Shown in pieces: positions 7,035-58,647 of a stretch of DNA of 64,000 bases. Below the pieces are notes generated by a model. It did no database searches, was not told the DNA's origin, and saw only the letters and a program-made list of their open reading frames with translations. Source of the DNA: Octopus sinensis (lineage: Eukaryota); contig NC_043005.1 of assembly GCF_006345805.1 (NCBI RefSeq), forward strand, positions 3,596,001-3,660,000. The letters are read 5' to 3'. The first letter of the stretch is position 1. Each line of letters begins with the position of its first letter. A program made the position numbers and the translations under genes.

Positions 7035-7746
7035 AGAGCTGAATGCTTTTTTTCTAGTATATTCTTTGTTGTTTATTTCTTCCATTAGACATTTCTGTCT
7101 TGTCGTTAATTAGTTCCTTAAGTCCTCCCCCCTCGACAGTAAAATAATGTTGAGGCAAAGGGGGAGGGGGGCAACCATAGCAACCTTTATAATACATTTT
7201 ACTGTATTAGTCTCTTGCTATCTGATCATGCTGGGTCTCCACTTTGAAGAATTTCAGTCAAATAAATCGACTCCAGAATTTTTTGAAGCCTGGAACATAT
7301 TCGATTAAGGGCCAGGCTTTTGCTGATGGTGGAGGACAGACACACATGTATGTGTGTGTATACACAATGGGCTTCTTTTAGTATCCGTCTACCAAATCCA
7401 CTCAAGGCTTTTGTCGGTCCAAGGTGCTATGCAGTGGGACTGAACCTAGACTCCTGTGGTTAGGAAGCAAACTTCTTACCACACAGCCATGCCTATGCTT
7501 TCTTTTTACATTTACCAACGCTAGAGATGTTTTGCAGCCAGATGCCCTTATCTATTTTACAAGTAAGGACTTTCTTATTTTATGTGTCTTAGAAGGCATA
7601 GACACATACAAACATTATATGATCATCACTAAGGGAGCCGACACACCTACATTGCTAGATATAAGAGTTAAAATACCCTTAATGCCATAAGAAGATTGCA
7701 GACATACATGCTGACAGGAGAAACTGTAGGTGCTTCAGCATCCTCA

Positions 7747-7810
7747 GCCTCAACTCGAGAACGACCTCCCAGTGGTGTTGGGTGTGCCAGTTGGCCACAA
7801 ACAGTTCTCA
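7747..7810 (+). ncRNA. HDV-like self-cleaving ribozyme fold at the 5' end of the LINE
   Basis: P1 7747-7754/7777-7783 (G1-U wobble, one bulged T). P2 GAGAAC 7757-7762/GTTCTC 7804-7809. P3 ACC 7764-7766/GGT 7774-7776. L3 TCCCAGT with U20/G25. Single-pair P1.1 C7769-G7784 followed by T, as in CPEB3. P4 GCCA/TGGC. J4/2 contains CAAA (C7798). Confidence 0.75.
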
Positions 7811-7827
7811 ACCAACAACTGCCGGTG

Positions 7828-8590
7828 ATGGCTCCAGACCCCCAGGGTCAAGTTTTCAGGAGCTGCCTACCCAACTTCACTGTTCCTCCACCATCTGCGC
7901 ATCCTAAGATCGGGAGATATTGAAACCAACCCTGGCCCTCAATATCCTTGTTGGGGGTGCAAGAAGGCAGCGAGTAGAGGGAGATTGCACTGTAAGGAGT
8001 GCGGCAAATCGTTTCACCGAAAGTGCTGCCAACTATCGAGGGTGATTATTGACCGAATGAAGCAAGATGGAGAATTTGTTGTATGTTGCCACTTGCACAC
8101 AGACGGAAGAAAGAAGACCCCTTTGTGCCCGGTGTAAGAGGTTGATATCAGACTGGCACATGCCAAAGCAGAATGTCAACAGTGCCAAGAGAAGTCACAT
8201 TTAGAATGTACAGAACTCAATCGACAGGAAAGGGAAGAATTGAAGGCAGGAAGGAGAATATGGAAGTGTCTTCGATGCTGCACGTCTGCAGAAGAGCCGA
8301 AAAGTGAAGTAAAGGTCGTGGACAAGAGATGTCAGCATTGCAAAAGAAGGGTGCTGAACCAATCTATTGTCTGCGAAGAGTGTCGTAAACATTTTCATTT
8401 GAGCTGTGCAAAGCGTGAAGGAAGGCAGACATTCCAGTCGGCAGAATGGAAGTGCAGAGAGTGCCAAAGACAGAATGCAGATGTGAAAGTGGCCAAAGGC
8501 GACAGTGAGGAAAAACCAAAGAAAGACTTTAAGACGGCAACGTGTAAGGTATATAAAGAAAAAGTAAGATTGGGAGCAACCGGATTAATA
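7828..8590 (+). pseudogene. Ingi-like ORF N-terminus: 2A/StopGo peptide, three PHD fingers and the start of a fourth (frameshifted)
   Basis: ATG at 7828, frameshift near 7853, then TSLFLHHLRILRSGDIETNPGP (7874-7939). PHD1 CWGC..CKEC.KSFHRKC; PHD2 CARC..CQQC.EKSHLEC..WKCLRC; PHD3 CQHC..CEEC.KHFHLSC..WKCREC. Confidence 0.85.
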
Positions 8591-11291
8591 GTTTAGCAAC
8601 TATTATATCGGCCTATGCCCCTCAGCCAGGGCTACCTGATGGACAGAAAGACTGTTTCTACGACACCCTACTGCAGACCACCTCATTGACGAACGACAGG
8701 GACCTTCTCTTTGTGGCTGGTGACTTCAATGGGCATGTTGGATGATATGCTGAGGGCTTCTATGGCGTTCATGGAGGTTATGGTTCTCGCAATGAGGAGG
8801 GAACCAGGCTGCTGGAGTTCTATGATGCGAATAGTCTTATGGTTTGCAACACTAACTTCAGGAAACCGACAAGCCACTTGGTCACCTACCGTTCGGGCCA
8901 GCAAACTAGCCAAATCGACTACATCCTTGCCAGAAAAAGGGAAAGATGGCTGCTTATAAATGCCAAAACCTTCCCAAGCGAAGAATGTACCCCACAACAT
9001 AGACTGGTAGTCAGTGACTTTAGAATCAGGACTAAGAAGACGACCAACATGGAGAAGAAGGGTCTGGAAGCTTAAAGACCCTGCAAATGGACAGAGATTT
9101 AGAGACATGTTACTTGAAGCCTTTGAAATAGAAGGGGGTATAGCTACACATGGGGTAGAGATAACTGGGCGCTTCTAAGGGACAACCTGCTGAAAGCCAC
9201 TGACCAGATCTGTGGCTGGTGCAAAGTCCCCTTAAGACCCAAAATAACGTGGTGGTGGAACAATATTGTTGACAGGGCTATTAGACAAAAGAAACAGGCT
9301 TGGAAGAACGGTGGTAGCAGGGAAGTGTATCAGACTGCAAGAAGGGAGGCTAGGAAGCAGGTGTATTTAGCCAGAGGGGAAGCAGATAAGAAAAAATTTG
9401 CCAATGTCCTGTGCCGTGAAGATGAAAGACTTGAGGTATTTCGTGTTGCAAGACAGTGTGTGAGAGAGAATCACAACGTGGTAGAAGAGAAACGTGTTCG
9501 CAAGGATGACGGCTCACTTGCGCTAAATGAGGATGCAAAGAGAGAGGTTTGGAGACGCCACTATGAAAGGTTGCTGAATGAGGAAAATGAATGGGATAAA
9601 GAGAGTCTGCCGAATGTTGACCCAACAGAGGGACCAGCAATCAGAGTTGATAGTTCCTTGGTAGTTAAGGCAATTAGAAGCATGAAGACAGGGAAAGTCC
9701 CAGGCCCATCTGGTATCACTGCAGAGATGCTCAAAATATCTGGTAGTGCTGGCTATAGCCTAGTCACCCGTATAGTTAACCAGGTGATACACGAAGGAGT
9801 CATTCCCAATGACTGGTGTAGCAGCATAATAGTCAACTGCTACAAAGGTAATGGTGACGCCCTAGATACAAATAATTACAGAGGTATCAAGCTGTTGGAT
9901 CAAGTAATGAAGGTTACGGAGAGGGTTATAGCCCAACAAATTAGAGAGAGAGTTAGCTTAGATCAGATGCAGTTTGGGTTTGTGCCAGGGAAAAGTACTA
10001 CTGATGCTATTTTCCTGGTAAGACAGCTGCAGGAGAAATACCTAGCCAAAGACAAGCCCCTATACCTGGCTTTTGTCGATATGGAGAAAGCCTTCGACAG
10101 GGTCCCCCGATCCCTTATCTGATGGTCAATGAGGAAACTAGGGATAGATGAATGGTTAGTGAGAGCTGTACAAGCCATGTACAGAGATGCTGCTAGTAAG
10201 GTGAGGGTTGGCATCGAGTACAGTGAAGGATTCAGGGTAGAGGTTGGGGTCCACCAAGGTTCAGTCCTCAGTCCCCTCCTATTTATCATAGTCCTCCAGG
10301 CAATAACGGAGGAATTCAAGACAGGATGCCCCTGGGAGCTCCTCTATGCTGATGACCTTGCTCTAATTGCTGAGTCTCTATCAGAACTGGAGGAGAAGTT
10401 TCAGGTGTGGAAGCAAGGTTTAGAATCGAAGGGCCTTAGAATCAACATAGCCAAAACCAAAGTCCTAATAAGTAGGAAGGTAGACCAATCACAAACGCCT
10501 TCAGGTAGATGGCCTTGCTCGATCTGTAGAAAAGGTGTAGGTAGAAACTCTATAAGATGCACCAAATTTAAGCTATGGACACATAAGAGATGTAGTAATG
10601 TCAAAGGAAGACTAACTAGGAAAATAGTTTTTATCTGTGGCAGATGCCCAGGAGCAATAAACTCTGAAAATATGCAGAGACCAACTTCTATCACGTTTCA
10701 GGGAGAAAAACTAGAAGTAGTTGATAGCTTCCGCTACCTAGGTGACTAAGTCAGTAGCGGGGGCGGGTGTGCTGAAAGTGTAACTGCTAGAGTAAGAATA
10801 GCCTGGGCAAAGCTTAGAGAGCTCTTACCCCCGCGGGTGACAAAAGGCCTCTCGCTCAAAGTAAAAGGCAGACTGTATGATGCATGTGTACGTACAGCCA
10901 TGCTACATGGTAGTGAAACTTGGGCTGTGACTGCTGAGGATTTGCGTAAGCTCGCAAGAAATGAAGCTAGTATGCTCCGTTGGATGTGTAATGTCAGTGT
11001 AAATAGTCGACAGAGTGTAAGTACCTTGAGAGAAAAGTTGGACCTAAGAAGCATCAGATGTTGTGTGCAAGAGAGACGATTGCGCTGGTATGGTCATGTG
11101 GCGAGAATGGATGAAGATAGGTGTGTGAAAAAGTGCCACACCCTAGCAGTTGAGGGAACCCGTGGAAGAGGTAAACCTGGGTCGAGGTGGTGAAGCACGA
11201 CCTTCGAACTTTAGGTCTCACCAAGGAAATGACCAGAGACCGAGACCTATGGAAGTATGCTGTGCGCAAGAAGACCCGGCAAGACCAGTGA
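8588..11291 (+). pseudogene. RTE APE-RT ORF with a few stops and frameshifts
   Basis: ORF pieces 8839-9075, 9325-10122, 10129-10749, 10837-11193. In-frame TGA at 10120-10122 replaces Trp and TAA at 10747-10749 replaces Gln. Ends KKTRQDQ* at 11291. Confidence 0.9.
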
Positions 11292-11389
11292 GAACAATCA
11301 AAATCAAACCAAATCAAATCATATATCAGAAAGCAGAACCAAAATTGAGGTCGATCAACATCAGTGGGAATTGCAGCTTTGGTTAAGCG

Positions 11390-11650
11390 AACTATCCGTT
11401 CGTGTCCGCTGCCAGCCCCGCCTGGCCCCCGTGCCGGTGACACATAAAAGCACCATCCGTTCGTGACCGTTGCCAGCTCTGTCTGGGCCCCCGTGTCGGT
11501 GGCACGTAAAAGCACCATCCGTTCGTGTCCATTGCCAGCCTCGCCTATCCCCCGTGCCGGTGGCACGTAAAAAGCACCATCCATCCGTGGCCGTTTTCCA
11601 GCTCTGTCTGGCTCCTGTGCGGGTGGCATGTAAAAAGCACCCACTACACT
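11390..11650 (+). repeat. Tandem ~60-bp repeat (4 units) in the RTE 3' UTR
   Basis: Unit aaaagcaccatccgttcgtg.ccgttgccagc...cccccgtgccggtggcacgt, with alternating variants. Confidence 0.85.
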
Positions 11651-11809
11651 CACGGAGTGGTTGGCGTTAGGAAGGGCATCCAGCTGTAGAAACATTGCCA
11701 GATCTGACTGGGCCTGGCGCAGCCTTCCAGCTTCACAGACCCCAGTTGAACCGTCCAACCCATGCCAGCATGGAGAACGGACGTTAAACGATGATGATGA
11801 TGATGATGA

Positions 11810-14800
11810 ATTGCCATGGTCATCATCACATAAAGTGTGTTACAAATACAAGACTACAAGCTGAACGCACCAAGGCCAATAAAGAATGGAAATTCAAAGA
11901 ATGCAGAGAAGCTGATCCCCCAAACATCCTCACCAAGTAATGCCAATGTCACTATTACTGGTGAAACAGTAGGTACCATCCAACCCCCCAATTGACCATT
12001 TTACAATGGAACGCGAATGGTATAATGCGAGAGGTTAACCTCCTGGAAGAGTGGAATGTCGGCATTGCCTGCATACAAGAAACTAAGCTGGTACCGACTG
12101 ACACCCTCCCCAGATTGAGAAAGTACATAGAAGTACGTCAAGATAGAGAAAGGGGAGGGGGTCTGTTCACTTTTATCAAAAAACAACTCCCCTATGCAGT
12201 CACGTCGAAGAAGGTTCACGTCGCCGGTCTTGAAGAACTTCATGTGAAGGTCCCGATACCAAATGATGAGAATGTTACAGTATCAAATCTTTACCTCCCC
12301 CACCCAAGCAACTCCCCCCCCTACCTTCATCGTCTCCAATACAAAGAGGATGAAATCCCAATTCCAATCGAGCTGATATCAACGCTTATGGTCCGCCGTG
12401 GGACAACCATGCTCACACCGATGAACGAGGTCGCCTGCTGGCAGAGAGAGTGATGGACGAGAACGGGGCTTTTATAAATGATGGCACACCAACAAGGCAA
12501 GACCCAGCAACGGGCAGTTTTTCATCGCCTGATATAACCATTGTTCACGAAGCCCAGGTAGAGATGTGTGCATGGGAGACATTGAACCATCTTATCATCG
12601 GACCATAAACCTATAATTATAACAATCGGGTTCCCCACTGCGTTGAATGAAGGAACAAAAACGACTTGTTTGGGATTGGAAGACAGGAAATGTTGAGGCA
12701 TTTAAGATTGATACAGATGAGGAGTTCAAAGACTGTCCTGCGGAAAGACCAAGCAAACTTAGTGACGAGGTGAGGCTGTTTAATGAACGCATCTTAAAAT
12801 CAGCGAGGAAAACGATTGGCTTGAAGGCAGTTGGGATGTCAAATGAGTGCTGGAGAATGCGGGAAATTGCCAAAGCAGAAAAAGAAAGGGATGTCATCCG
12901 CGAAAGAGTGGGGATTCACACGGACGAGTTACAGGAGCAAGATGAGAAATTGAAAGGGTTGATCAAAGAAAGAAAGATGGAGATTTGGCAAAGGAAGGTA
13001 ACATCTATGAAAGGAACAACACAAATGTGGAGAGTTCTGCGCAGTCTGACCAACCCACGTAGAGAAGACCCAGCAGGAATAATCACAAAGGGAGACAAAA
13101 AGTATGTTACTCGTCTTGAGAAGGCGAATGTCTGCAAGTTCCCTCAAGATTGCCAAAGAAGACAGAGGCATGAAAGGTGTAACAAATGGTTTTCCCCGTA
13201 AGCACCAAGATGACTCCAAAATAAGCAAAGAGTTCACTAAAAGCGAGGTCGCAGCTGCAATCAATAGTCTGAATCCTTCCAAAGCAGCGGGTCCAGATTA
13301 TATCCACCCACGCCTTCTGCACCACATTGGGAGCAATGCCCTAAAAGCTCTAACAGACATCTACAACAAGTCCTGGGCCTCACTCCAAGTCCCGCAGGAA
13401 TGGCGCAATGCAGACATATGGCCTATGCTCAAACCGGGGAAAAACCCGAACCAATTTTCCAGTTATAGGCCGATCTCGCTTACCTCAGTGGTGGGCAAGG
13501 TGATGGAGTGTCTCGTGTGCAATAGATTGCGGTACATCATAGAAAGTAACAGGCTCTTAACCGAAGATCAAGCAGGTTTTAGGCCGAGAAGGAGGACCGA
13601 AGATCAACTCCTCAGATTGTCCCAGACGATTAATGATGGCTTCCAACAGAAACCAATAGCAAGAATGGTGATGGGGTTGATTGATGGGGTTCGGCGGGAT
13701 GCTTTAATCAATAAGATGGCAAAGAAGGGAATTCCAATACATATCATCAGATGGACCCACGCGTGGCTGGCAAACAGAATGAACTGGGTTTCGTATGAGG
13801 GCAAGCAAAGCAAAAAGCTGGTATTCAAGCAAGGTGTACCTCAGGGTTCGGTGCTTTCTCCGCTACTTTTCCTGCTCTACATTGATGACTTAGCCGATGA
13901 AATGCAAGACCTTAACATAAGCATTTTTGCTGATGATGTGGCTTTGTGGAAACAGCACCCAAGCTTGGCTATTGCAGAAAAGGCATTACAGGGCGGGTTA
14001 AACAGATTGGCAGAGTGGAGTGCTAAGTGGAAAATGACAATTTCCGTCCCAAAGTCAGAATGTACCTTCTTCTCGACCAACTCACATGAAGCAAGCTGGA
14101 GACCAAACCTTGAGCTAGAAGGCAACCAGTTGAGTTATAACCCAACCCCAGAGTTTCTCGGGGTCACTTACGACCGCCAACTCACCATTACCGCCCATAC
14201 AAACATTGTTTGCAACAACGTGAAGCGACGGGCCGCAGCTGTGCGCAGATTGGCAAATACAGATTGAGGATATGATAAGGAAACTCTTCAAGCTGCCTAT
14301 ATCACAGCAGGAAGATCCATTATTGAGTATGCAGTGCTGGCTTGGACACCTTGGATCTCGAACACAGCCATGAAGAAATTGGAGGCGAGCCAGCGGTATG
14401 CTGGTCGGGCAATTACTGACCACATGCACACCACACCACGGGAGGCGATCTTGGCCGAAGCAAACCTAGCTCTGATTGCAACTCGTGCAACCCAGCTAAG
14501 CGTTATCGGCCTGGAGAAGTCGTATTGAGTCGGCCAAGATAACCCTCGCCAGTTAATTGCAGAAAGGGAAATTCAACAGCGAACGAAGAAGAAGGGTTGG
14601 AGAGAGAAAGCCAAGGAAGCATGGTCCTCCCTATTCAGGGAAAGCAAGCCGCAAAAGCTACCAGATTTGCTGCCACCATGGTTGGAGATTGGGAACCCGG
14701 TGTTTGAAATAGAAGGGGAGAAGTCAACCAATAGCGAGAAAGATCACCGGAACGCCATCACTAGATTGAACAAAGACTGGGTGGAGTTTGACTCGACAAG

Positions 14801-15650
14801 CTACAAGGATGGGTCAACGTCATCAGAAAATCAAAACGGAGGAGGCGGTGTCATCACCACACCGGGTCGACTGTCAGAGCCGAGAATAGTTTCAGCAATG
14901 AGCCTGCCAGCAGGAAAATGGTTCTCTTTGTACCAAGCGGAGATGAAAGCCATGAAGCAAGCCTTGAACCTTTTAATCGATGGTTGCAGTGGAAAGAAGG
15001 TCCGAATTGTTAGCGACAGCAAGGCAATGCTCCTGAGGCTGAAGAGCTTGGACCCCTCCAGTCCCTTACAAGATGGTGATGAAAGAGAAGTTGTTAAGTT
15101 ACTCCACACTCTTCATCAACAAGAATGCGACCTGACGTTCATTTGGTGCCCCAGTCATCGCAGGATCGTAGGGAATGAGCTGGTGGATGAGAAAGCGAAA
15201 GAGGGACCTGAACAAGATCAAGAGGGGGAAGATTGGCATTATGCAGCAGCAAAGGCGGCTATCAAACGATCGATAAAAAACCCTCCAATGCAGCATGAAC
15301 GGTTGCGAAAGGTTTCTGGTGAAAGAGGAGAAAAGCCCAATCGCATCGAGGAACGACGGTTGACTCGTAAAGAACAAGTCACGCTTAGCAGAATGCGAAG
15401 CGACCACCATCCGGATTTGAGAAGCTGGCAGCGCAAGATTGGAAGAATTGAGGACCCTATTTGATGCAATTGCAAAATGGGTTAAGAAACGGGAGAACAT
15501 GTGATGTTGGAGTGCCCAGCTATCCATCCGTCGATCCGCGGTCAGCTGACGGACCCTGAGGCGATTGCGAAGGAGACCAGACTGGCACTCAAGGTGTGGG
15601 AGAAATGGCTGAAGATGGGGAGCAGCACTAACCAACTATACAGCCAGTAG
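11810..15650 (+). pseudogene. Ingi-like ORF remainder: end of PHD4, APE, RT, RNase H, CCHC
   Basis: NCHGHHHIKC..W.FKEC; TILQWNANG, CIQETKL, NDGTPT, SDHKP; YRPISLTS, QGSVLSP, YIDD, FLGV; DGS, AEMKA, SDSKA, WCPSH..IVGNELVD; C-x2-C-x8-H-x4-C (decayed) near 15462-15515. TAG at 15648-15650. Confidence 0.88.
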
Positions 15651-16084
15651 TTGCTAAACAGCAACAACAACAACATCAGCATCCTCAGTTACACTTAGGG
15701 ATGATTGAAGTTTTCCTTTATGGTATCACATTGCAGCTTATATTAATGTTGTTTTTTTATAAATATATATATATATATACACACACCTATATATATGTAC
15801 ACACATCTATATGAGTATATAGATATACATTGATACATGTTTAATATGCGCACATGTCTTTCTAGATAGATATGTGCCACTCAGTCCAAAAGTTGAACCC
15901 ATGATCTAGTGGTCATGAGTGCAACACCCACACCACCTGACCACACACCTTCACCTTATATATGTGTGTGTTTTTTTGTTAGAATAAAAACAATTTTACA
16001 TTAAACTGAATGATTACTCAGTATTCATAGAGTACACATTTTTTAAAAAAAACAAAGAAAGAATGGTAATAGAGTTAAAACTTT

Positions 16085-16627: not shown

Positions 16628-19192
16628 GCAAATTAGCAGCCGTTGTAAGTGTTGAGCATATAAACAGACTGGCTTCTTGTTTCTCTGGGATTGGCCAAAT
16701 TGATGTAGATGCGTCTGGTGAGAATCCCATAAGATTCAAATTTCATTTAAACCAGCCAGGTCCAACCAAATATTCTACAAGTTTTATGTTCAAACTATCA
16801 AGATCTGGCCTCTCACACATCCTCTACATTGTCATTCTAAAAGTAAACAATCACATCAAAATCAAATAGAAATTGTAGTTGAGCTCCCTGTGCCGGTGGC
16901 ACACAAAAAGCACCATTCGAACGTGGCCAATGCCAGCACCGCCTTGACTGGCTCCCATGCCAGTGGCATGTAAAAAGCATCATCCAATCATGGTCGATGC
17001 CAGCCCCCTCTGGCCCCTGTACCAGTGGCATGTAAAAAGCACCATCCGGTCGTGGTCAATGCCAGCCTCCTCTGGCCCCTGTGCTGGTAGCACCAAAAAG
17101 AGCACCCACTACACTCTCGGAGTGGTTGGCATTAGGAAGGGCATCCAGCTCTAGAAACACTAACAATGTGAAATCTGAATGCCAAAGGTTTAAAAGATGG
17201 TTCATCATTTTTTTGTTTTGTTTTGTTTTTCACTCTGCAGAAAAACAGCCAAATGAACCGTTTGTAGAGGTAGGAGATAAGTTACATATGTATATACAAC
17301 AGCTTCCACATAGTTTTTTTTTTTTTTGCCTGTGAAATCCATTCAGAATGGTTTGGCTAATGCAGGGCTGCAGTTAAAGACACTTGTCCTTGGTGGGTCA
17401 CAGCAGAACTAAACCAAAAGCCAAGTGGTTGGGAAGGAAACTTCTTAACGAAACAGCTCTTTGCAGTCTGAGATCAAACCTACTGAGGTCAATCTTGCTT
17501 TTCATCTTTTCAGGGGTGGGACATCCATAAAGTCTAAGAAATTAGAATGGCAGAATGGTTAGAATCTCAGCAAAGATGCTTAGCAACAAGCAACGTCTGT
17601 TGTGATTCCTTGCTTTCTAGGTTATAATGATAGTCCAGATTAAACAGCTGGTCACATTAAACCTGCAATAGGTTAGCTTGGATGGGTTGGCATATGACCA
17701 ATATAGAAGAACCTAGCAACAGCATGCTGAGGCTTTCATCCAGTTCCAAACTAAAAACAGCTGAATGGAAAAGACCATTAAATACTTTGATGATGATGAT
17801 GGTGAAGTTTTTTAACACATAAAGCATGACAGGCCACGATCATGGCCCAGATAGATGCATTTAATTTATGAGCGTATGTTGGGGTCTAATGTCACTCAAA
17901 CACTCTGATACCCCCCAGAATGCAAGAGGACTAATAGTTTAACTAAAGACTTTTCAGATGATCTAAAACTTTCCATCATTAAATACTAAGAAGATATTTT
18001 AACTACTGTTTTTGTTTTTTATGTGTGCGTGGTAGTCTCATTTTCATAAAATGTGCTCAGCAGTCCATGCTATGTAAAGTCCCAGCACTTTATCAGTTAA
18101 CATAATAACAAAAGCTTCAAATTTTGTAGGGAGTGGCTAGTCTATTAGATCAAGCTCTGGAAGATGTCCGGTACTTATATTTCATTGGCCCAGGGAGGAT
18201 GAAAGGCAAAATTGACTCAAAAAAGATTTATACATCACATCTGAAGGGTTGCAACTATTGACAGCTCAGCATTTGTTGTAGTCTCTTCTCATTTGACATT
18301 TGACAATTAAGCTTAGAAATGTTTGTGTGCCACTGGTGCCACGTGCACTCTGTAAAATGATTGGCATCAGGAAGGGCATCCAGCTGTAGAAACCATGTTA
18401 AAACAGACCACTGGAGCCTGGTTCTGCTGTTGGCCTTGCTAGCATGGAAAATGGATATTACAAGATGATTCTGATGATAATGAGGAAGATGATGATGATG
18501 ATGATAACAATAAAAATCAATAACTTAAAATATGTTCTGTTTTATATCTGATAATCAGCTGGCTCAATCATTGTCAATATGACAAAGAAATTGCTAACCA
18601 AATTCCACAAGCTAATAGAAAACAGAACATTGGAACTGTAGCCCTTTCCAACTACAGATTTGGCAAAAAACAAAAACAATGGACATCAAATGAGTTTTTT
18701 CTCAAAGAAACGTATATACTTTTGATCCCTCCAACTCTTACAATACAAGTATTTTTTTGTTTTCAACTGAATCCTCTCACAATCAAACAGACTTTGTAAT
18801 GTTCATGAAGTGTTGTTGAAGCTTTTTTTTTTGTTTTTTTTTGTTTTTTTTTGGTCTTTTTTTGTTGTTTTGTTTTTTTTTCAATATTTGGGATTTCCAT
18901 CTGAAAATAGGAATGTTCCTCGCACAAGAAATAAATTAATATAATAATCAAATTATAATTAAATATAAAATAAAATATTTACTTACAATAATAATGAGTA
19001 TCAATGAATTTTTTTTTTTTTTTTACCTAATTTTTGGAACTGGAGCTGGGGTTACGTATGAATTTTCAAATAAACAACTGGTCCTAATTTGTGTGGGTCT
19101 GAATTTATATAATACATCTGAGCCTCTCAGTATGATCAATGAAACTCTGAGTCTATCAACATGTGTGTGTGTGTATGTACATATATATATAC

Positions 19193-19224
<32 letters not shown>

Positions 19225-20346
19225 CACACACACACACAAAATGTGTGCATGTATATATGTAGATAAATAGATAGATACACAAGGTATGTGTGTCTAAGCC
19301 TATTTAATCCAATTATGACCTCTCCGTCTGAAATAGATCTGGACAGCGATATAATCAATGTGTGCAAGTTTTATTGTTTTGTTGCACTCTATCAACATGT
19401 GTATATACGTATACACAAGCTTTATGTGTGAGTGTATATGTTTATATTGTGTCATGTCAATCGAGAGTATTTATTTGGGGACAAATAAGCCAGGACAACC
19501 TGTCACTGTATTGGGTCATTAGGGAGTAACCTGTTGTCCCAGCCAGGTTACCCTAGGAGAGAAGGGTTGTTAGAAACCAAGCAGGGCAAAACAAGGTCAA
19601 AGGGATAGATGAACCCACTCTAAGGTCAACAACCATCTAGCAATTGTGTGAAAATTTAGAAACACCAAGTGGTGTTCAGTGTACCCTAAAATCAATAGGA
19701 TTGTGCCCACTCCACTGGCTCTCAATAAAGCACGTTTCAAGGAGGGGGTTACTCTATTGTAAAACCTGAGCAATGCTGTTTGAAGAGAGTGGCACATGAG
19801 AGCTATTTCTATTTTTCTGTCGTGAAAATCCCTCAGCAGCTCAGTACTGGAATTGTATTTAACTATTGAGCCTTCATACATTGAATTGGACAGGATAGGC
19901 CACCATTAAATATGTGTGTATACTATATAGCCTCACTGTGTATTAAATAAGAATGTAAACATTCCTTCTACACTATTGATGTAAAGAAAAACAATGAGGG
20001 GGAGTTTCCTGACTGACTGCTTCAAGTTGAACACTCTTCAGAGAAGTAACCCCGTTTTCTTAGTCAATGGCAGAGATCAGCTGCTTATAAAGTAATCATA
20101 GATTAGGCTAGCACATTAGTGGATAGCTTAATTGCATATTTGTGCTTTTGACAGCTCATCATCAAATATTTATCTTCAAAACAGTGTAAACCAGGACCGA
20201 AATAAATTACAAAGCCTCACTGTGAGTTAAATAAGAACATAAACAGATTGCTGTTGATGTGTGGATAATGAGGATCTGTTGGTCACTCCGCAGAGAAGAC
20301 ATACTTGGTTTCTGTCCTCAATCAGTAGCATGCACATATATATATA

Positions 20347-20378
<32 letters not shown>

Positions 20379-22860
20379 CACACACACATGCAATTTTAAT
20401 ACAAATGTAAGTGATCAAAGATCTGTCACTTTGAATCAGAGGCAAATCCCTTCATAATATCATCATTCAGAAATATCTATCAAAGACTGACTGACCCTTC
20501 TGTCTTCAGGGATGAGGGGTAAAGAAATAGCCGTTCTTACCTGCATTCCTTTGCCAAAGACAGTAAAAACAAGTGCCAATGAAAAAGAATGGTAAAAGCA
20601 AATGTTGGAACTGGACTGTTGAGGAAGCAAAAGTCGCTGCAAGCTGAAAGTTCCACTCGTATTGGCAACATCACTGATTGTCACAGCCAGTGGTTTTAAA
20701 AGCCAACCATTGTAAGACTGGTCCTAAATCTAACTTAGAAAGTTATGAGCTATATCAAATAAGTTCACCTAATTCAATGCCTTGTTTAATTATAACCAAC
20801 AGATTCAGAAAACATGATAAAAATAATTGTTAATAGAAGTAACAAGATCCCTAAAGATTTTTTTTTTTTTGCATAATTAACCCTTAGAATACAATTAGAT
20901 TGGGCTATCACTTAGAAGTTATAAAAGAGGTAGAGCTGATCCCTTTAAAAATGTATAAATTCTTTCTTTGTTGAATAGGTAAATTGTGGATAGGATGACC
21001 TTCATGTAAGAGCCACCAGCACGTGGCTCCGGACTAAGGATTCCAGCTGACCAAGCCTGCCCACGTCTCCTGGTTTACCACCTCTACTGGACTTCACCAT
21101 GTGTGTGTATGCAGTGTATTGGAAATGTGTATATTCATGTGTGTGAATATATATGTGTAGATATGTGTTTGTCATGTCTGGACACATTTGTATTTATCCA
21201 AGAGCAATATTGGTTTCCATTTTGGCACAAGGCCAGCAATTTTGCAGAAGAGGGATTAAGTCAATTACATCAACCCCAGTGCTCAACTGGTACTCCAAAA
21301 GGATGAAGGGCAAAGTTGACCTTGGCAGCATTTGAACGATTCTGCCATCTTGCTCCCTTAGACCCAAGTACAATATTAAGCTTATATACGCATGAACTGT
21401 GTGTGTGTGTATAGACACATATATGCATGTACACACACACACACCTACATATGTGCTGGAGGCCATTGTATCTACACATTGTTTAGGAGGAGGTCAGTGT
21501 AAAAAAAAAATGCAGTTGACAAATAAGTAGAAAATAATATTTAGTTGTCAGTTTTGAAAATGTGTGTGAGTGTTCAAATCCCATGCTAGTTCTATGTTTG
21601 GATCCTCCCCCAACCCCACTCAACATGAACTAAAATTAAATGCTACAGAAAGGACTAACTTAATCTGGGTCTGGTAATGGTCAGAATTCGTGAAATTAGT
21701 TTTTCTAAAGGATTTGTTTATAGCACCTATCATAAAATCATGTGTGTGTGTGTGTGTGTGTGGAAATAAATACATACTTAACAAAATAATAATTAATAAT
21801 AATAATAAGGGATTGGAAAAATAAGATAAAAATGAAGAATGTTGCTGTAAACCCTTAGGAATCTTCATGAGTCTATGGGAAAAAATTTTGTCCCTTTTTT
21901 TTTTGGTTTTGTTTGGAGCAACAACTAAAAAGAATAACAAAATAAACAAGTTAAAATGAAAAAAAAAACACAAAAGACAAACGAAAACAAAAAGGTCATT
22001 AGTGTTTGAATTATACAAGATGGGAAAAAATAATAATTATAATAATAATAGTAATAATAATAATAACAACAATATGATATCACATTCTGTCTTACATAGG
22101 TTTGAACCGGCAACAGCATGGTCAACATTTTAGTATCATGTCTCTGCCCGGAACTTGACCAATATGGAGAAAAACCCACCCACCCCCATTGTATAATGTT
22201 CGTATCATCTCCATGTGTCCTCCATGTCCAGAGTCTTTCATCTAATTTCATTCTTAAACACCACCACCCCCGGCTCCCCTCCACTGCTGCCAAACACCAG
22301 ACTGACCGTTCACCCAAACACCAGCTTGACCACTCACCCACTGAGAGGGTGGAGCGGAGGTGGAGAGAGAGAGAGAGATGATGTAGAAGGAAAGAAAGAG
22401 AAAAGGTCTAAGAAAATAATTACAAAGGCTCTTTGAATAATTTACTTTCCATTCACACAGGTTTATGGCGAGAAGGGAGTCTGGGAGAGAGAGTGGGAAG
22501 AAGAAAAGGACGACAAAAACAAGGGGGCAGGTGGACCCCCACACTCACCCACCCCCACCCATAAAAGCAGTCATTCAGTGTTTGGCATTTCCTTTCCTCC
22601 TGAAATTCCATCTGGATTAATTAATTAATTAAAAATTAAAAAAACAAAATCTTTATACACTCACACATGCATTCTTACAAGCAGTCAGTCGGCGAATGAA
22701 AGACATATTTTAGGCGCTGCATTTGTTGGTTTCTTCTTCTTCTTCTTCATTTTCCACTCCCCTCTTCCTCCTCTTCACAATGCAGCAAGTTTCAGTTCTC
22801 CAGTGACAGTTGACTGTCAGTACTGTGTTGGTGCTATGCATTTAGTAGGTTCAGTTATAT

Positions 22861-22982
22861 ATATGTGTGTGTGTGTATATATATATATACATATATATAT
22901 ATTACATATACATATATTTTTATATATAATTATGTATATATATATATATATATATTATATATAATTATGTATATTTATATAT

Positions 22983-23026
<44 letters not shown>

Positions 23027-23410
23027 TTATATGTAATTATATATATATATTAAATTTTTATATACAATCATATATATATTTGTGTGTATAAATATAGATG
23101 TGTATGCATATATAAGTGGATGGGTTATATATACATATATGTATGTAATTATATTATCTATATTTATACACACATACAAACATATTATACACACATATAA
23201 GTATATGTGTATGCATGTATAGATATATGTAATTATATATATTTGGGTTTATGCACATGTGTGTAAGTATGAGTTATATATACAAATATACATACGTGTA
23301 TGTGTATATATATAATCTGTGTGTATACATGTTTATGTGTCCGTGTGTGTATGTGTATAAATATTTGTGTATTTGATGTATAAATATCTATGTACACGTG
23401 TGTTTATACA
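22861..23410. repeat. Compound (TA)n/(TG)n/(TATG)n low-complexity tract downstream of the RNF11 stop
   Basis: Directly visible degenerate dinucleotide repeats. Confidence 0.9.
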
Positions 23411-42844: not shown

Positions 42845-42887
<43 letters not shown>

Positions 42888-45046
42888 TATATATAGTTGA
42901 AATTTACAGAAAAACAATAAAGCAAGTGTATTCGTTTGAAGCTCGGGAAGGTAAGAAAGTCTTTTAATGTTTCAACCCTTTGCTCTTCAACAGAAAAGAA
43001 CACGAGAAAATAAACAGAGTGATATTAAAAAAAAAATTGTGGATTTAGTGGTCAATCATACATATATATAGATATATACATACATGCGTGTGTGTGTGTG
43101 CAAGCACATGTGTAGCTGTCTGATATACAAGCTTGTCTCCCAACCATATGGTTCTAGGTTCAGTCCTGCTGCAGGGCACCTTAGACAAGTGTTTTCTACC
43201 ATAACCCTGCACTGACCAAAGCCTTCTAAATGCATTTGGTAGGTGGAAACTGAGAGAAGCCCAGTGGGTCTTTTTATGTGGCACCAGCACTAGGGAGGTC
43301 ACCAAGTACTTTCCAAGACTACGAACCCCAAAACAGGCAGTTTTTATGGTAGGAGAGGAGGTGTTGAAGAATGAGAGTAGAACAGACATCTTGCTGCAGG
43401 GGAGTGAAATGGTTTTGCACATTTTAGAAGAGAGGATAAAGGAGATCAGAGAGGGTCAGACAAGAGTATGATGGAGCAGAGATTTCTATGGGTGGATGCC
43501 CTTCTTGTGGCCAACACCCCTTACTTGTTTCCAGATGAGGTAATAATATCCCATTCTATGAAATAATAAACAGTGGTGATGAAGTGTTCAGGTGGCAGGA
43601 GCAACGGTGGTGGGGGGGGAGAGGGAAATAGGCAACATCTGTTAGGACTGAGGGGAGGAGGTGCAAGAGGAGAGAAACAGGGGACAAAAGATGATGAGGT
43701 TAGGGAGATATTAGCAGTACGGTGGTAACCATACTGTTGACAGGGGAAGGAGAGAGATAGACAGATAGCACGCGAGAGAGAGAGAGAAAGAGAGCATGAG
43801 AGAGAGAGAGAGAGAGAGAGAAGAGAGCATGAGAGAGAGAGAGAAATATGAGGTGTTTGGGTAGGTTGCAGGAGTGGAGAAAAAAGATAAAACAGGTGTG
43901 TTTATATGCATATATAGCGTTTGTGTGTGTGTATATATATATTAGTTATGCATTCATATGTGTACGTGTATACACACACACGCACGTATGTATGCATGCA
44001 CACACAAACCCCAACTATTGTGCAACTTTAAATCTGTCACACCTTTCCAATCGATGCAAGGTGTAAAACACACGAAAAAAGCCCCAACAGTCAATTCCAC
44101 GATTGCAAAATATTGCCATGATGTACGGTGGGAGAGAGATGGATGCAGACAATACGCTTCCCTGTCATTGCAAACAAATATAAATACTGCATAATCAATG
44201 CAAACGCTGCATTATGCATCGTCGCCAAATGCACAATCAATATCAACATGCAACATTGACTGCTCAAAACATTGCCAAAACAAACCATCGCAGACACTGT
44301 GTGCACCACACACTCAAACCCCCACCCACCTCCCATCACGTGCATCTTCAATGCCGCAAAATGCAAATATAAAAAAAAAACCAACAAAAGTGTTTCTATG
44401 TAACCACTAAACCTACTAGAAATAGCAGCCAAATTTTCCTCATAGAGATGCAGGCATGACCATGTGGTGTTAAGTTTGTTTCTCAACCACATGGTTCCAA
44501 GTTCGGTCCCACCACATGGAACCTCAAGCGTCTTCTACTATAAACTCAGCCTGACCAAAGTCTTGCAAGTGAATTCAGTAGACAAAAATTCAAAGAAGTT
44601 CGTATCGTGGGTATGTTTGTGTACACACACACACACACACACACAGACGCATATATATATATATATATATATATGTAATTGACATATTTATAGACATAAG
44701 TTACATGAGAACATAGTTTTTGTAAATTTTTATCTTTTATTTTATTTTTTGTAATTTTTTATTTGAATTAAATTATGGCTTGTACAGTAGGGTCCGGCGA
44801 ACCTTTTTACACATACTTATATGTTTAAAAAATTAAAACAGTTTTTCGTATCAAACTATGAGAAAGTGATGTAGAGGCCTGATGATTGGGGTTCTATTTT
44901 AAGAAAGGTTCCAGCAAAACACGGCGTGGTTAAGGAACCGGGAAATGAACTTCAAGAAACACGTGTAGCCGAGATATAAGTAGCAAGTATTGAATTAAAT
45001 AAAAATTCTTTTATATGGTGGGATGAAGGGGTCTACTATCTCTAAA

Positions 45047-56369: not shown

Positions 56370-57673
56370 TATGTAATCTTGTTAGATATTTCGGGTTCAA
56401 TACATGCAAGAGTCATCTTTACCTTTCAACCTTTGGGGATCAATAAATCAAAATACTAATAATAATTTCTGATTGAAGCACAAAAAACACCAGTAATTTT
56501 GAAGTGGTGGTGGGGGGGAGGTTGATACCATTGATCCCAGTTTTTGACTGGTATTTTGTTTTATGACCCCAAGAAGGATGAGAGGCAATGTGGCCTAGTG
56601 GATAGGCTGTTGCACTCATGAACATAAGATTGTGGTTTTGATTCCTGGGCCAGGATATGCAGTGTGTCCTTGAGCAGGACCCTTCATTCCACACTGCTCC
56701 AGTCCACTCAGTTGTGAGTAGCCATTGTGATGGAAGGGGATCCCGTTCAGGGGAAACTGTTGGGATCTCAGTCACTTATACACCACGGAAATCAGATAGA
56801 CAGGCCCTATAAGCTGTAAGGGCCTGAGACAGTAACGTCCAGGGGTTGATGATGAAGGATGAAAGGCAAAGCTGACCTCAGCAAAATGAAAATGCAAATC
56901 GTGCCAACATTATGCTGGAGTTGATATGAGCAATGGCTGCTCTTCCGAAAAAGGAAGGAAAAAAGCCTGAAAGAAATGGAAGCAAACAAAGGAAGAAATC
57001 TACAGAAAAAAAAAAACTGATTCAACACAAAACTACAACTGCAAATGGACCTCCTCATAGTCATTCATATTGCTAAAAATAGCAGCCAAATCACCATCAT
57101 ATTAAACCAAACTGCCGTTCAAAAAGAGAAGACAGGACATGGCAATGCAACAATATATTGTCCGGATTAGTTCATTTTTTTACAGTTAAACTCAAAGTAG
57201 ATAAAATTATAAATAATAACCTGTAAATATGGAGTTAAAAATGTTTTTGGATAGAAAAGTCAAAGGCTGTTCCATGGGACATCCTTCAACCTTTTCCATC
57301 TGAAGGGTGTCTTCTTAGCCTAATATTTACATGCCATTATAGCTTTATCTACTTCAAGTTCCACTGTTAAAAATGAATTATTTCAGGTCTCTTGAAGTTT
57401 TGAAATTCTTATGACAATCATTTAGTATATACACGCAAAAATACAGGATAGTCATGGGCGGAAGGTCTTTGATCACAGATCTGCTCGAGCAAGGCTGATC
57501 AAGAACACAACAACAGTCTAATCCCATATATCTTTCCACAGCTAAAAAGTAGCAGTTGAGTAGCTTTGTTTAGTTCCAGTAAGTAAAGGAATTAGTCAAT
57601 ATTATGTAGACAGTGGAATCAATGGAACCACTCCGTATCTCACACATACATAAACACATGCATTATACAAGAT

Positions 57674-57704
<31 letters not shown>

Positions 57705-58647
57705 AATACATTATACATCACATATACATACATGTGTCATGTATACATAATCATGCATATGCGCATATACATCTGCACACAGATGCACACACACACACAC
57801 ACATGTGCAAATGCACACGTAATGCACATATATCTGTAATTTCAGATAAATTGACAGCAAACCATAATACGTTGAGTGCATTAAGTGCATAAACATCAAA
57901 AGATGCACACATGCAGAGTGGGAGAGCAGAAGACTGACGACTGCACAGATAGCTGAAAAGCAGCAGCAGCACTTGTCTTCTGTTACTTCTCTCATACCAT
58001 TTAAGAGGCGGCACCGAGATTCAGCAATTGGTAATTCAGTTGACTGAATGTCATAACCCAGTTTTGATTCTTGGCTAGAATTGCTCCAGCTGTACCTGTG
58101 ATATCTTGCGGAAAAGTATGAACCTCACATTATCACTGCCATCATCATCATCTTTGTCATAAAGTCCATTTTTCCATAATGCTTGCATGAGTCAGACAAA
58201 ATTCATTGAGGCAGATTTTCCATGGCTGGATGCCCTTCCTGTTGCCAACCCTTACCTGTTTCCAAGCAAAGTAATATTTCCCTATGACCAGATACATATT
58301 TCATACAAAAGTAAAAGTAGGCCTAGAGGTTAAAGCTTATATGACAAAGATGCCCGTATACAACCATCAGGTGATGTCTAGACGTGGGCACACTCACACA
58401 CACACATATCATCATCATCGTTTAGCGTCCGCTTTCCATGCTAGCATGGGTTGGACGGTTCAACTGGGGTCTGGAAAGCCAGAAGGCTGCACCAGGCTCA
58501 GTCTGATCTGGCAATGTATCTATGGCTGGATGCCCTTCCTAATGCCAAACACTCTGAGTGTAGTGGGTGCTTTTTACATGCCACCGGCACGGGGGCCAGG
58601 CGAAGCTGGCAATGGCCACGATCAGATGGTGCTTTTAAAGAAGCCTG

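Follow-up and report, generated by a model that had tools for sequence, protein, structure and literature searches.

Organisation of the locus

The window, by which we mean the whole 64 kb stretch of DNA analysed, is eukaryotic and repeat-rich, with a GC content of about 40%. A non-LTR retrotransposon has been identified at 7748-15675 on the forward strand. Translation and Pfam matches reveal that it encodes, in order, a 2A peptide, PHD fingers, an APE endonuclease, a reverse transcriptase (RT) and an RNase H, which probably made up a single ORF originally. The features of the element, together with the relative (L005) used as reference for its coding region, are as follows.

7735-7747 (+): 5' copy of the target site duplication (TSD), 13 bp, TCAGCATCCTCAG; G7747 is shared, closing the TSD and opening helix P1
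7883-7939 (+): 2A ribosome-skipping peptide at the ORF start, from translation, ...LRILRSGDIETNPGP, core at 7913-7939
7940-8596 (+): PHD-finger region, Pfam PF00628 (E = 3e-10), colinear with the ORF of L005; decayed, with a stop at 8138
8600-11808 (+, approximate): nested second non-LTR element, 5'-truncated, with its own RT and a (GAT)n tail; separate from the element under study
11809-15464 (+): rest of the host coding region, from Pfam and tblastn against L005; several frameshifts
11992-12453 (+): APE endonuclease, Pfam PF03372
13104-14267 (+): reverse transcriptase, Pfam PF00078
14667-15464 (+): RNase H, Pfam PF00075
15662-15675 (+): 3' tail (CAA)n, CAACAACAACAACA
15676-15688 (+): 3' copy of the TSD, 13 bp, TCAGCATCCTCAG

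APE-type non-LTR retrotransposons with an N-terminal 2A peptide, GD(V/I)ExNPGP at 40-80 residues from the ORF start, have been described before (PMC3708506). The APE, RT and RNase H domains, the TSD, the simple-repeat tail and the 2A motif are all present in the element considered here. The two TSD copies are identical, and the 13-bp word has just 2 matches in the window as against 0.09 expected by chance. This copy of the element is dead, since its frames are broken several times and it carries a nested insertion of 3.2 kb. Further copies of the element have not been found within the 64-kb window.

The nested element has its RT at 9325-10749, with RVT_1 matches in Pfam at 9325-10746, and the host ORF picks up again after it at 11809, as seen from tblastn against L005. 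It also has an APE C-terminal motif near 8700, a PHD-like finger following the RT and a (GAT)n tail at approximately 11793-11808. A SINE-like repeat with GGTTGGCATTAGGAAGGGCATCCAGCT occurs 15 times in the 64 kb, on both strands (4292, 11659, 17124, 18359, 24385, 31082, 31717, 33137, 38456, 45564, 50436, 54222, 58224, 58524 and 61019). One of its copies (11659-11685) lies inside the 3' part of the nested element, which suggests that the nested LINE and the SINE-like repeat form a LINE/SINE pair with a common 3' module.

A double-pseudoknot fold at the 5' end of the element

An HDV-like ribozyme had been proposed at the 5' boundary of the element in an earlier note, and all the helices drawn there are present in the sequence where the note had placed them. 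The region 7747-7809 satisfies the nested double-pseudoknot order P1-P2-P3-L3-P3'-P1'-P1.1-P4-J4/2-P2' with the following segments.

7747-7754 (+): P1 5' strand, GCC(T)CAAC, T7750 bulged; predicted cleavage 5' of G7747
7755-7756 (+): J1/2 spacer, T7755 and C7756
7757-7762 (+): P2 5' strand, GAGAAC, six Watson-Crick pairs with 7804-7809
7763 (+): J2/3, one unpaired G, opposite A7803
7764-7766 with 7774-7776 (+): P3, ACC/GGT
7767-7773 (+): L3, TCCCAGT, 7 nt, enclosed by P3
7777-7783 (+): P1 3' strand, GTTGGGT, 7 bp with G7747-C7754
7784-7785 (+): J1/4, G7784 in P1.1 and T7785 unpaired
7786-7795 (+): P4 hairpin, GCC (7786-7788)/GGC (7793-7795) with an AGTT loop, 3 bp
7796-7803 (+): J4/2, CACAAACA, with C7798 as the candidate catalytic cytidine
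7804-7809 (+): P2 3' strand, GTTCTC

The first pair of P1 is the G7747.U7783 wobble, and the equivalents of U20 and G25 are kept in L3 as T7767 and G7772, both in agreement with the note. The single P1.1 pair which it described is C7769-G7784, followed by the unpaired T7785; this one-pair P1.1 presumably recalls that of CPEB3. Its CAAA in J4/2 is likewise found, and C7798-A-A-A aligns with a C-R-R-A that is conserved in 6/7 of the elements compared below.

Two irregularities of the fold had been put down, tentatively, to decay following insertion. The A7803 mismatch is not decay, since an unpaired A before P2' and opposite an unpaired J2/3 base recurs in three of the related elements (L001, L003 and L004). 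Decay is not required for the bulged T7750 either, as P1 of L007 likewise has one bulged base. A bulge-free register of P1 (7749-7754 with 7777-7782) was considered and rejected; it shifts the 5' end 2 nt inside the TSD boundary and loses the P1.1 pair.

The minimum-free-energy (MFE) fold, which is free of pseudoknots, recovers P2, P3 and P4. Compared with shuffled sequences this pseudoknot-free MFE reveals no extra stability of the fold (z = -0.16), as is expected for a pseudoknot. The bulged P1, the one-pair P1.1 and the 3-bp P4 are the weak points of this copy, which is a fossil in a dead element and may have lost its capacity to cleave.

Occurrence of the motif in related elements

Relatives of the element have been identified through its RT, with sequence identities of 39-55%, in several ENA assemblies and in a contaminating contig of the metagenome-assembled genome of a lucinid-clam symbiont. 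They were selected by similarity of the RT protein and not of the RNA. A motif homologous to 7747-7809 of the window has been identified in six of them (L001, L003, L004, L007, L083 and L084), which come from five other assemblies, and it is situated 170-330 nt upstream of the NPGP motif in all six. The segments of the six motifs, with the position of each, are given below; the linker is the region between P1' and P2'.

L001, 7928: P1 CCCGAC, J1/2 TAC, P2 AGGAAC, J2/3 C, P3 ACC, L3 TTCACGC, P3' GGT, P1' GTCGGG, linker CCTAACGGAGA, P2' GTTCCT
L003, 7276: P1 (CAG)CAAC, J1/2 TCC, P2 GGGGAC, J2/3 C, P3 ACC, L3 TCTGCAT, P3' GGC, P1' GTTGGG, linker CAAAACAAAGA, P2' GTCCTC
L004, 7807: P1 CTCCCAC, J1/2 AA, P2 TCCTCC, J2/3 A, P3 ACT, L3 TCAACGC, P3' AGT, P1' GTGGGAG, linker TGGACCCCGAGAGGTTACGAA, P2' GGGGGA
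L007, 8044: P1 GCGG(A)GAC, J1/2 AACGA, P2 TCCGGA, no J2/3, P3 ACC, L3 TTCACGT, P3' GAT, P1' GTCCCGC, linker GAGGAGATGCAGCC, P2' TTCGGA
L083, 4530: P1 CTGCACC, J1/2 AA, P2 TCAACAGCC, no J2/3, P3 GCC, L3 TCAACGT, P3' GGT, P1' GGTGCGG, linker TCCCCGGCCCTGTTTGGGTTGGGTCGAAAT, P2' GGCTGTTGG
L084, 3906: P1 CTACACC, J1/2 AA, P2 CGACAAGCC, no J2/3, P3 ACC, L3 TCAACGT, P3' GGT, P1' GGTGCAG, linker TCCCCTTCCCTACACTGGAAAGGGTCGAAAT, P2' GGCTTGTCG

Some of the copies are imperfect: L001 is without the P1.1 pair, L003 has a P1 of 4 bp and an A.C in P3, and L007 has a C.A in P3. The first pair of P1 is G.U in the window, C-G in L004, L083 and L084, and G-C in L007. The J1/2 spacer is 2-5 nt long in 7/7 elements; HDV-like ribozymes are known to need a spacer of at least 2 nt for activity (PMC4908430). 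The linker between P1' and P2' is highly variable, from 10 to 31 nt, and P4 is absent in L001, L003 and L007, while it is long and covarying in L083 and L084, where this helix shows two G.U to U-A compensations.

The 2A motif followed by PHD fingers has been found in every relative which reaches the 5' region with a recognisable ORF start. The motif is present in L004-L007, L082 and L084 and in a decayed form in L001, and in L005 and L082 the 2A, PHD and APE regions form one continuous ORF. The 5' end is unusable in five relatives, of which three (L002, L008 and L081) are truncated and two (L005 and L082) start inside the motif or just after it. An HDV-like fold was not found in the AT-rich 5' region (7780-8140) of L006, a full-length element with an RT 44% identical and a 2A motif GDIEINPGP; the lineage of L006 may have lost the fold or had it replaced. 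Protein searches with ORF1, as the window sequence and as a profile of six sequences, yielded nothing useful.

Compensatory changes and conserved unpaired bases

The motif of the window has been compared with those of the six relatives. The block P3-L3-P3'-P1' of all the seven elements is placed in register by MAFFT unaided. The program fails on the 5' strands of P1 and P2 due to differences in length of J1/2 and P2, and the pairs of these two helices were therefore counted on a hand-made, structure-guided alignment. The earlier note had let its reading depend on covariation of P1, P2 and P3 among copies, and such covariation is seen: on the structure-guided alignment 105/112 helix cells pair (94%), with two-sided compensatory changes in 13/16 pairs (P1 6/7, P2 6/6 and P3 1/3). 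None of 5000 column shuffles matches the 105 paired cells and 13 compensatory pairs, the shuffle mean being 72 paired cells.

On the MAFFT alignment 90.5% of the P3 cells are paired, and a single C-G to U-A compensation is seen in this helix. The first P1.1 pair, also on this alignment of the seven elements, is AU in three, CG in two, UA in one and a non-pair in the remaining one; a second P1.1 pair is found in L004 and L007 only. The covariation score of P3 and P1.1 taken together is 0.39 on the MAFFT alignment, as against 0.16 +/- 0.05 in shuffles, 1/500 of which reach it, and at most 0.114 in controls with slid partners.

Certain unpaired positions are also conserved. The first position of L3 is U in 7/7 elements and the sixth is G in 6/7. 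The C-R-R-A in J4/2 lies 4-6 nt before P2' in the window, L001, L003, L004, L083 and L084, and L007 deviates from it. The U and G positions of L3 and the C of J4/2 are known to form the active site in HDV-like ribozymes (PMC4908430, PMC3774820).

Target site duplications and tails

The observation in the earlier note that the predicted cleavage site coincides with the junction of TSD and element to within 1 nt holds good in the window, and the coincidence repeats in L004, L007, L083 and L084. In these five elements the TSD adjoins the first nucleotide of P1 within 0-2 nt, as listed here.

Window: TSD TCAGCATCCTCAG, 1-nt overlap with the first base of P1
L007: TSD ACTACAATGTGT, ends directly before G8044, the first base of P1
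L083: TSD AACTGGCGGTC, 1-nt overlap with the first base of P1
L084: TSD ACATATTGTAACCCT, 2-nt overlap with the first base of P1
L004: TSD AGCATCAACAG, ends 2 nt before the first base of P1, or 1 nt if a G7806.U pair opens P1

TSDs in this group of elements are 11-15 bp long, and in each of the five the 3' copy directly follows a tail of (CAA)n or (CAAA)n. The tails (12340-12369 in L004, 12545-12565 in L007, 9310-9324 in L083 and 15662-15675 in the window) are made up of these repeats and are not poly(A). The small overlaps of TSD and P1 look like the microhomology joins reported in those R2 lineages in which cleavage falls at the element's 5' end (PMC3774820).

The remaining two elements lie head-to-tail, directly behind tail-like DNA. 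In front of L003 (6950-7285) this is another copy, whose 3' end stands in place of the first three bases of P1 and whose tail supplies the CAAC that completes the shortened P1. L001 (7700-7927) is situated directly behind tail-like (CAA)n DNA.

Chance expectation and model searches

A descriptor of the topology only, in which G.U pairs and one bulge are allowed, has dozens of matches on both strands of the window, many in TA/TG repeats and roughly two dozen in ordinary sequence. The TA/TG/CA microsatellite tracts at 19160-19260, 22860-23120, 42850-42930 and 57640-57760 are the main source of spurious matches to this loose descriptor. With a stricter descriptor (U at position 1 and G at position 6 of L3, and limits on wobbles) there are 26 matches in 573 kb, about 4e-5 per base. 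The drawing of helices alone is compatible with chance, and the case must therefore rest on independent evidence.

One such line of evidence is an anchored-shuffle test, independent of the structure-guided alignment, in which P3 and L3 were kept fixed, 40 nt upstream and 110 nt downstream were shuffled, and a P1 with at most one defect together with a 6-bp P2 was counted as success. The p values are 0.008 for the window, 5e-5 for L001, 0.0033 for L004, 0.0032 for L007, 0.014 for L083 and 0.004 for L084. L003 fails the test because its P1 survives in just 4 bp.

The Rfam models of HDV, CPEB3 and drz ribozymes, which are narrow and in which pseudoknots are not scored, gave no HDV-like match in the whole window at the gathering threshold or in 7600-8000 at E <= 10, and nothing relevant in L083 and L007 at E <= 10. 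In L004 the drz-agam-1 model (RF01787) gave a sub-threshold match of 12.7 bits (E = 3.7), the gathering threshold being 37 bits, and this alignment has the same register for P3, L3 and P1'. A covariance model built from L001 and L003 only ranks 7748-7812 of the window first in 64 kb and in the expected register, with a weak score of 12.0 bits (E = 0.63); L004, L007, L083 and L084 were not found with it.

Approximately thirty loci of other LINE clades in JGI and ENA metagenomes, chosen solely by a 2A peptide plus a PHD finger, served as controls, and no such fold was found in the 400 nt upstream of their 2A. The core sequence pattern has 42 matches in bacterial and archaeal genomes, all of them in ordinary coding DNA and judged to be due to chance, and no match in viral contigs.

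Possible roles of the conserved fold

The sequence comparisons indicate that 7747-7809 is, with good probability, a DNA copy of an HDV-like self-cleaving ribozyme which forms the 5' end of the retrotransposon, a reading that applies at the level of the family. Its support comes from the conserved fold, the compensatory changes, the core bases that are kept and the agreement with the TSD boundary. Catalysis and co-transcriptional folding we infer by analogy with R2 and L1Tc. Transcription of the element would come, at least in part, from read-through that starts in upstream DNA. The first ~63 nt would fold on emerging, with P1 stacked on P1.1 and P4, and P2 on P3, and the J4/2 cytidine C7798 together with the U/G pocket of L3 would catalyse scission 5' of G7747. 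An uncapped RNA with a 5'-OH, starting at the first base of the element, would thereby be freed, and its full-length reverse transcription could account for the genomic 5' junction at the first nucleotide of P1.

The main rival is a double pseudoknot, conserved at the 5' terminus, that is non-catalytic and resembles HDV-like ribozymes in fold only, potentially serving in a cap-independent start of translation, in binding of an element protein at integration or as an internal promoter at the DNA level. Conservation of helices proves structure and not catalysis, and the first 77 nt of L1Tc, which comprise a promoter and a ribozyme, exemplify that 5' ends can hold several functions (PMC3383444, PMC3185411). 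In L007 and L084 the 2A frame runs uninterrupted through the fold, and L005 and L082 lack an in-frame ATG before 2A, both of which fit a role in the start of translation; the great variation of the P1'-P2' linker (10-31 nt) is also in its favour. The rival is nevertheless rather unlikely: the unpaired bases that are conserved are those which an HDV-like active site needs (L3 U in 7/7 and G in 6/7, C-R-R-A in 6/7), the P1.1 pair covaries, and the structure begins at the first base of the element, a hallmark of ribozymes with their cleavage site 5' of P1. The two roles are not mutually exclusive.

Selection could instead have acted on a leader peptide in the 2A frame and not on the RNA, as no stop interrupts this frame across the motif in L007 and L084, and in the window it is almost open. 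The leader peptides have no recognisable common sequence, while the helices keep pairing through two-sided changes; in-frame stops are found just downstream in the window, L001 and L004, and the conserved bases sit in loops of the RNA fold. Such coding constraint is very improbable and, like chance, nearly excluded. A chance match, in which helices are drawn on an ordinary 5' UTR by generous rules (bulge, mismatch and G.U), is the least probable reading: the dozens of topology-only matches in the window and the 26 stricter ones in 573 kb, the silence of Rfam on the window and the ordinary folding energy would be in keeping with it, but the comparative data refute it as far as computation can, since six relatives have this fold in the homologous position and with compensatory changes, the shuffle p values per element range from 5e-5 to 0.014, the TSD boundary coincides with the fold in five elements and the control 2A elements have no matches upstream of 2A.

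The 2A frame and the translation of the element

The intact relatives L005 (1-160) and L082 (1-150) have no in-frame ATG between the motif and 2A. In L007 (7984-8250) and L084 (3825-4250) the 2A frame is open through the whole of the motif and past the 5' end of the element. An ATGGC located just 3' of P2' (window 7829, in the region 7826-7940 examined, and nucleotide 8 of L082) is out of frame with 2A. The missing in-frame ATG and the frame open through the predicted ribozyme suggest AUG-independent or read-in translation, with a leader that is trimmed by 2A.

More tentatively, the ribozyme, the AUG-less open frame and 2A could constitute one functional module, in the kinetoplastid L1Tc/ingi elements and in the metazoan relatives considered here alike, though we regard this as a doubtful extension. 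The ribozyme would yield an uncapped RNA, ribosomes would start at variable non-AUG or upstream sites in or near the folded ribozyme, or enter from a host ORF, and 2A would remove whatever leader had been made, giving a constant N-terminus of the PHD-APE-RT protein. If this is true, HDV-like ribozyme and 2A would owe their ancient association to a mechanistic link and not to coincidence.

Comparison with known HDV-like ribozymes

The presence, at LINE 5' ends, of HDV-like ribozymes is already established for R2 and L1Tc/ingi, and such ribozymes have reportedly been described at the 5' ends of RTE- and LOA-type elements also (Ruminski et al., in 2011). They provide one route by which host read-through transcripts can yield RNAs of promoterless LINE-type elements that have a defined 5' end. 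The present family would add a ribozyme lineage that is missed by current Rfam models, in invertebrate elements that bear RNase H and encode 2A, and would extend to animal genomes the ribozyme-plus-2A combination so far documented in trypanosome L1Tc/ingi. The seven natural variants, which differ in having or lacking P4, in the base at +1 (C or G) and in the bulging of P1, could serve as the seed of a better covariance model and as a test set for the tolerance of the fold. In genome annotation, the motif would mark full-length 5' ends of this 2A-PHD-APE-RT-RNase H family.

Every deviation observed here, such as the loss of P4 and a C at +1, is precedented in the R2 and L1Tc ribozymes. The ribozymes of R2 have a P1 of 6-7 bp with mismatches, a P2 of at least 5 bp, a P4 that is often absent and a J1/4 of 0-2 nt, and their conserved bases are the catalytic C and four others only (PMC3774820). 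In L1TcRz scission falls 5' of C1, and the pairing partner of this base is G37 (PMC3185411). A G.U at the cleavage-site pair is thus not strictly defining, as the active L1TcRz has C1-G37, and this pair is matched by the C-G in L004, L083 and L084.

The closest parallels are with L1TcRz, the ribozyme in the first 77 nt (Pr77) of L1Tc of Trypanosoma cruzi, from the L1Tc/ingi clade. In both an HDV-like fold lies on the first bases of the element, with cleavage, here predicted, 5' of nucleotide +1. Both elements are APE-type LINEs with 2A near the N-terminus of the ORF, an N-terminal 2A being known in L1Tc and Ingi (PMC3708506), and in both the RNA would be uncapped and its translation presumably cap-independent. 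Elements of the present group differ from L1Tc in host, which to judge from the sources of the relatives alone is probably a mollusc or another invertebrate of the sea, in the PHD fingers between 2A and APE and in the (CAA)n tail, and there is no detectable sequence similarity between the two. LINEs bearing 2A are also known in molluscs, echinoderms, cephalochordates and cnidarians, in a report that makes no mention of ribozymes (PMC3708506).

With drz-agam-1 (RF01787) the motif shares the L3 pattern U-Y-C-N-C-G-Y and a P3 of ACC/GGU, while its J4/2 of 6-8 nt is longer than the 4-5 nt of drz-agam-1 and other genomic HDV-like ribozymes.

The R2 ribozymes of arthropods and other animals resemble the motif in the nested double pseudoknot, the P1 of 6-7 bp with tolerated defects, the variable or absent P4, the J1/4 of 0-2 nt and the few invariant bases (catalytic C and L3 G). 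As in R2, microhomology makes the 5' junctions differ by a few bases, and an open frame extends up to the ribozyme with no fixed AUG (PMC3774820). R2 inserts site-specifically into 28S rDNA, has a restriction-like endonuclease and is often cleaved inside 28S sequence, whereas the elements described here are APE-type, with varied insertion sites, TSDs of 11-15 bp and a predicted cleavage at their own first base.
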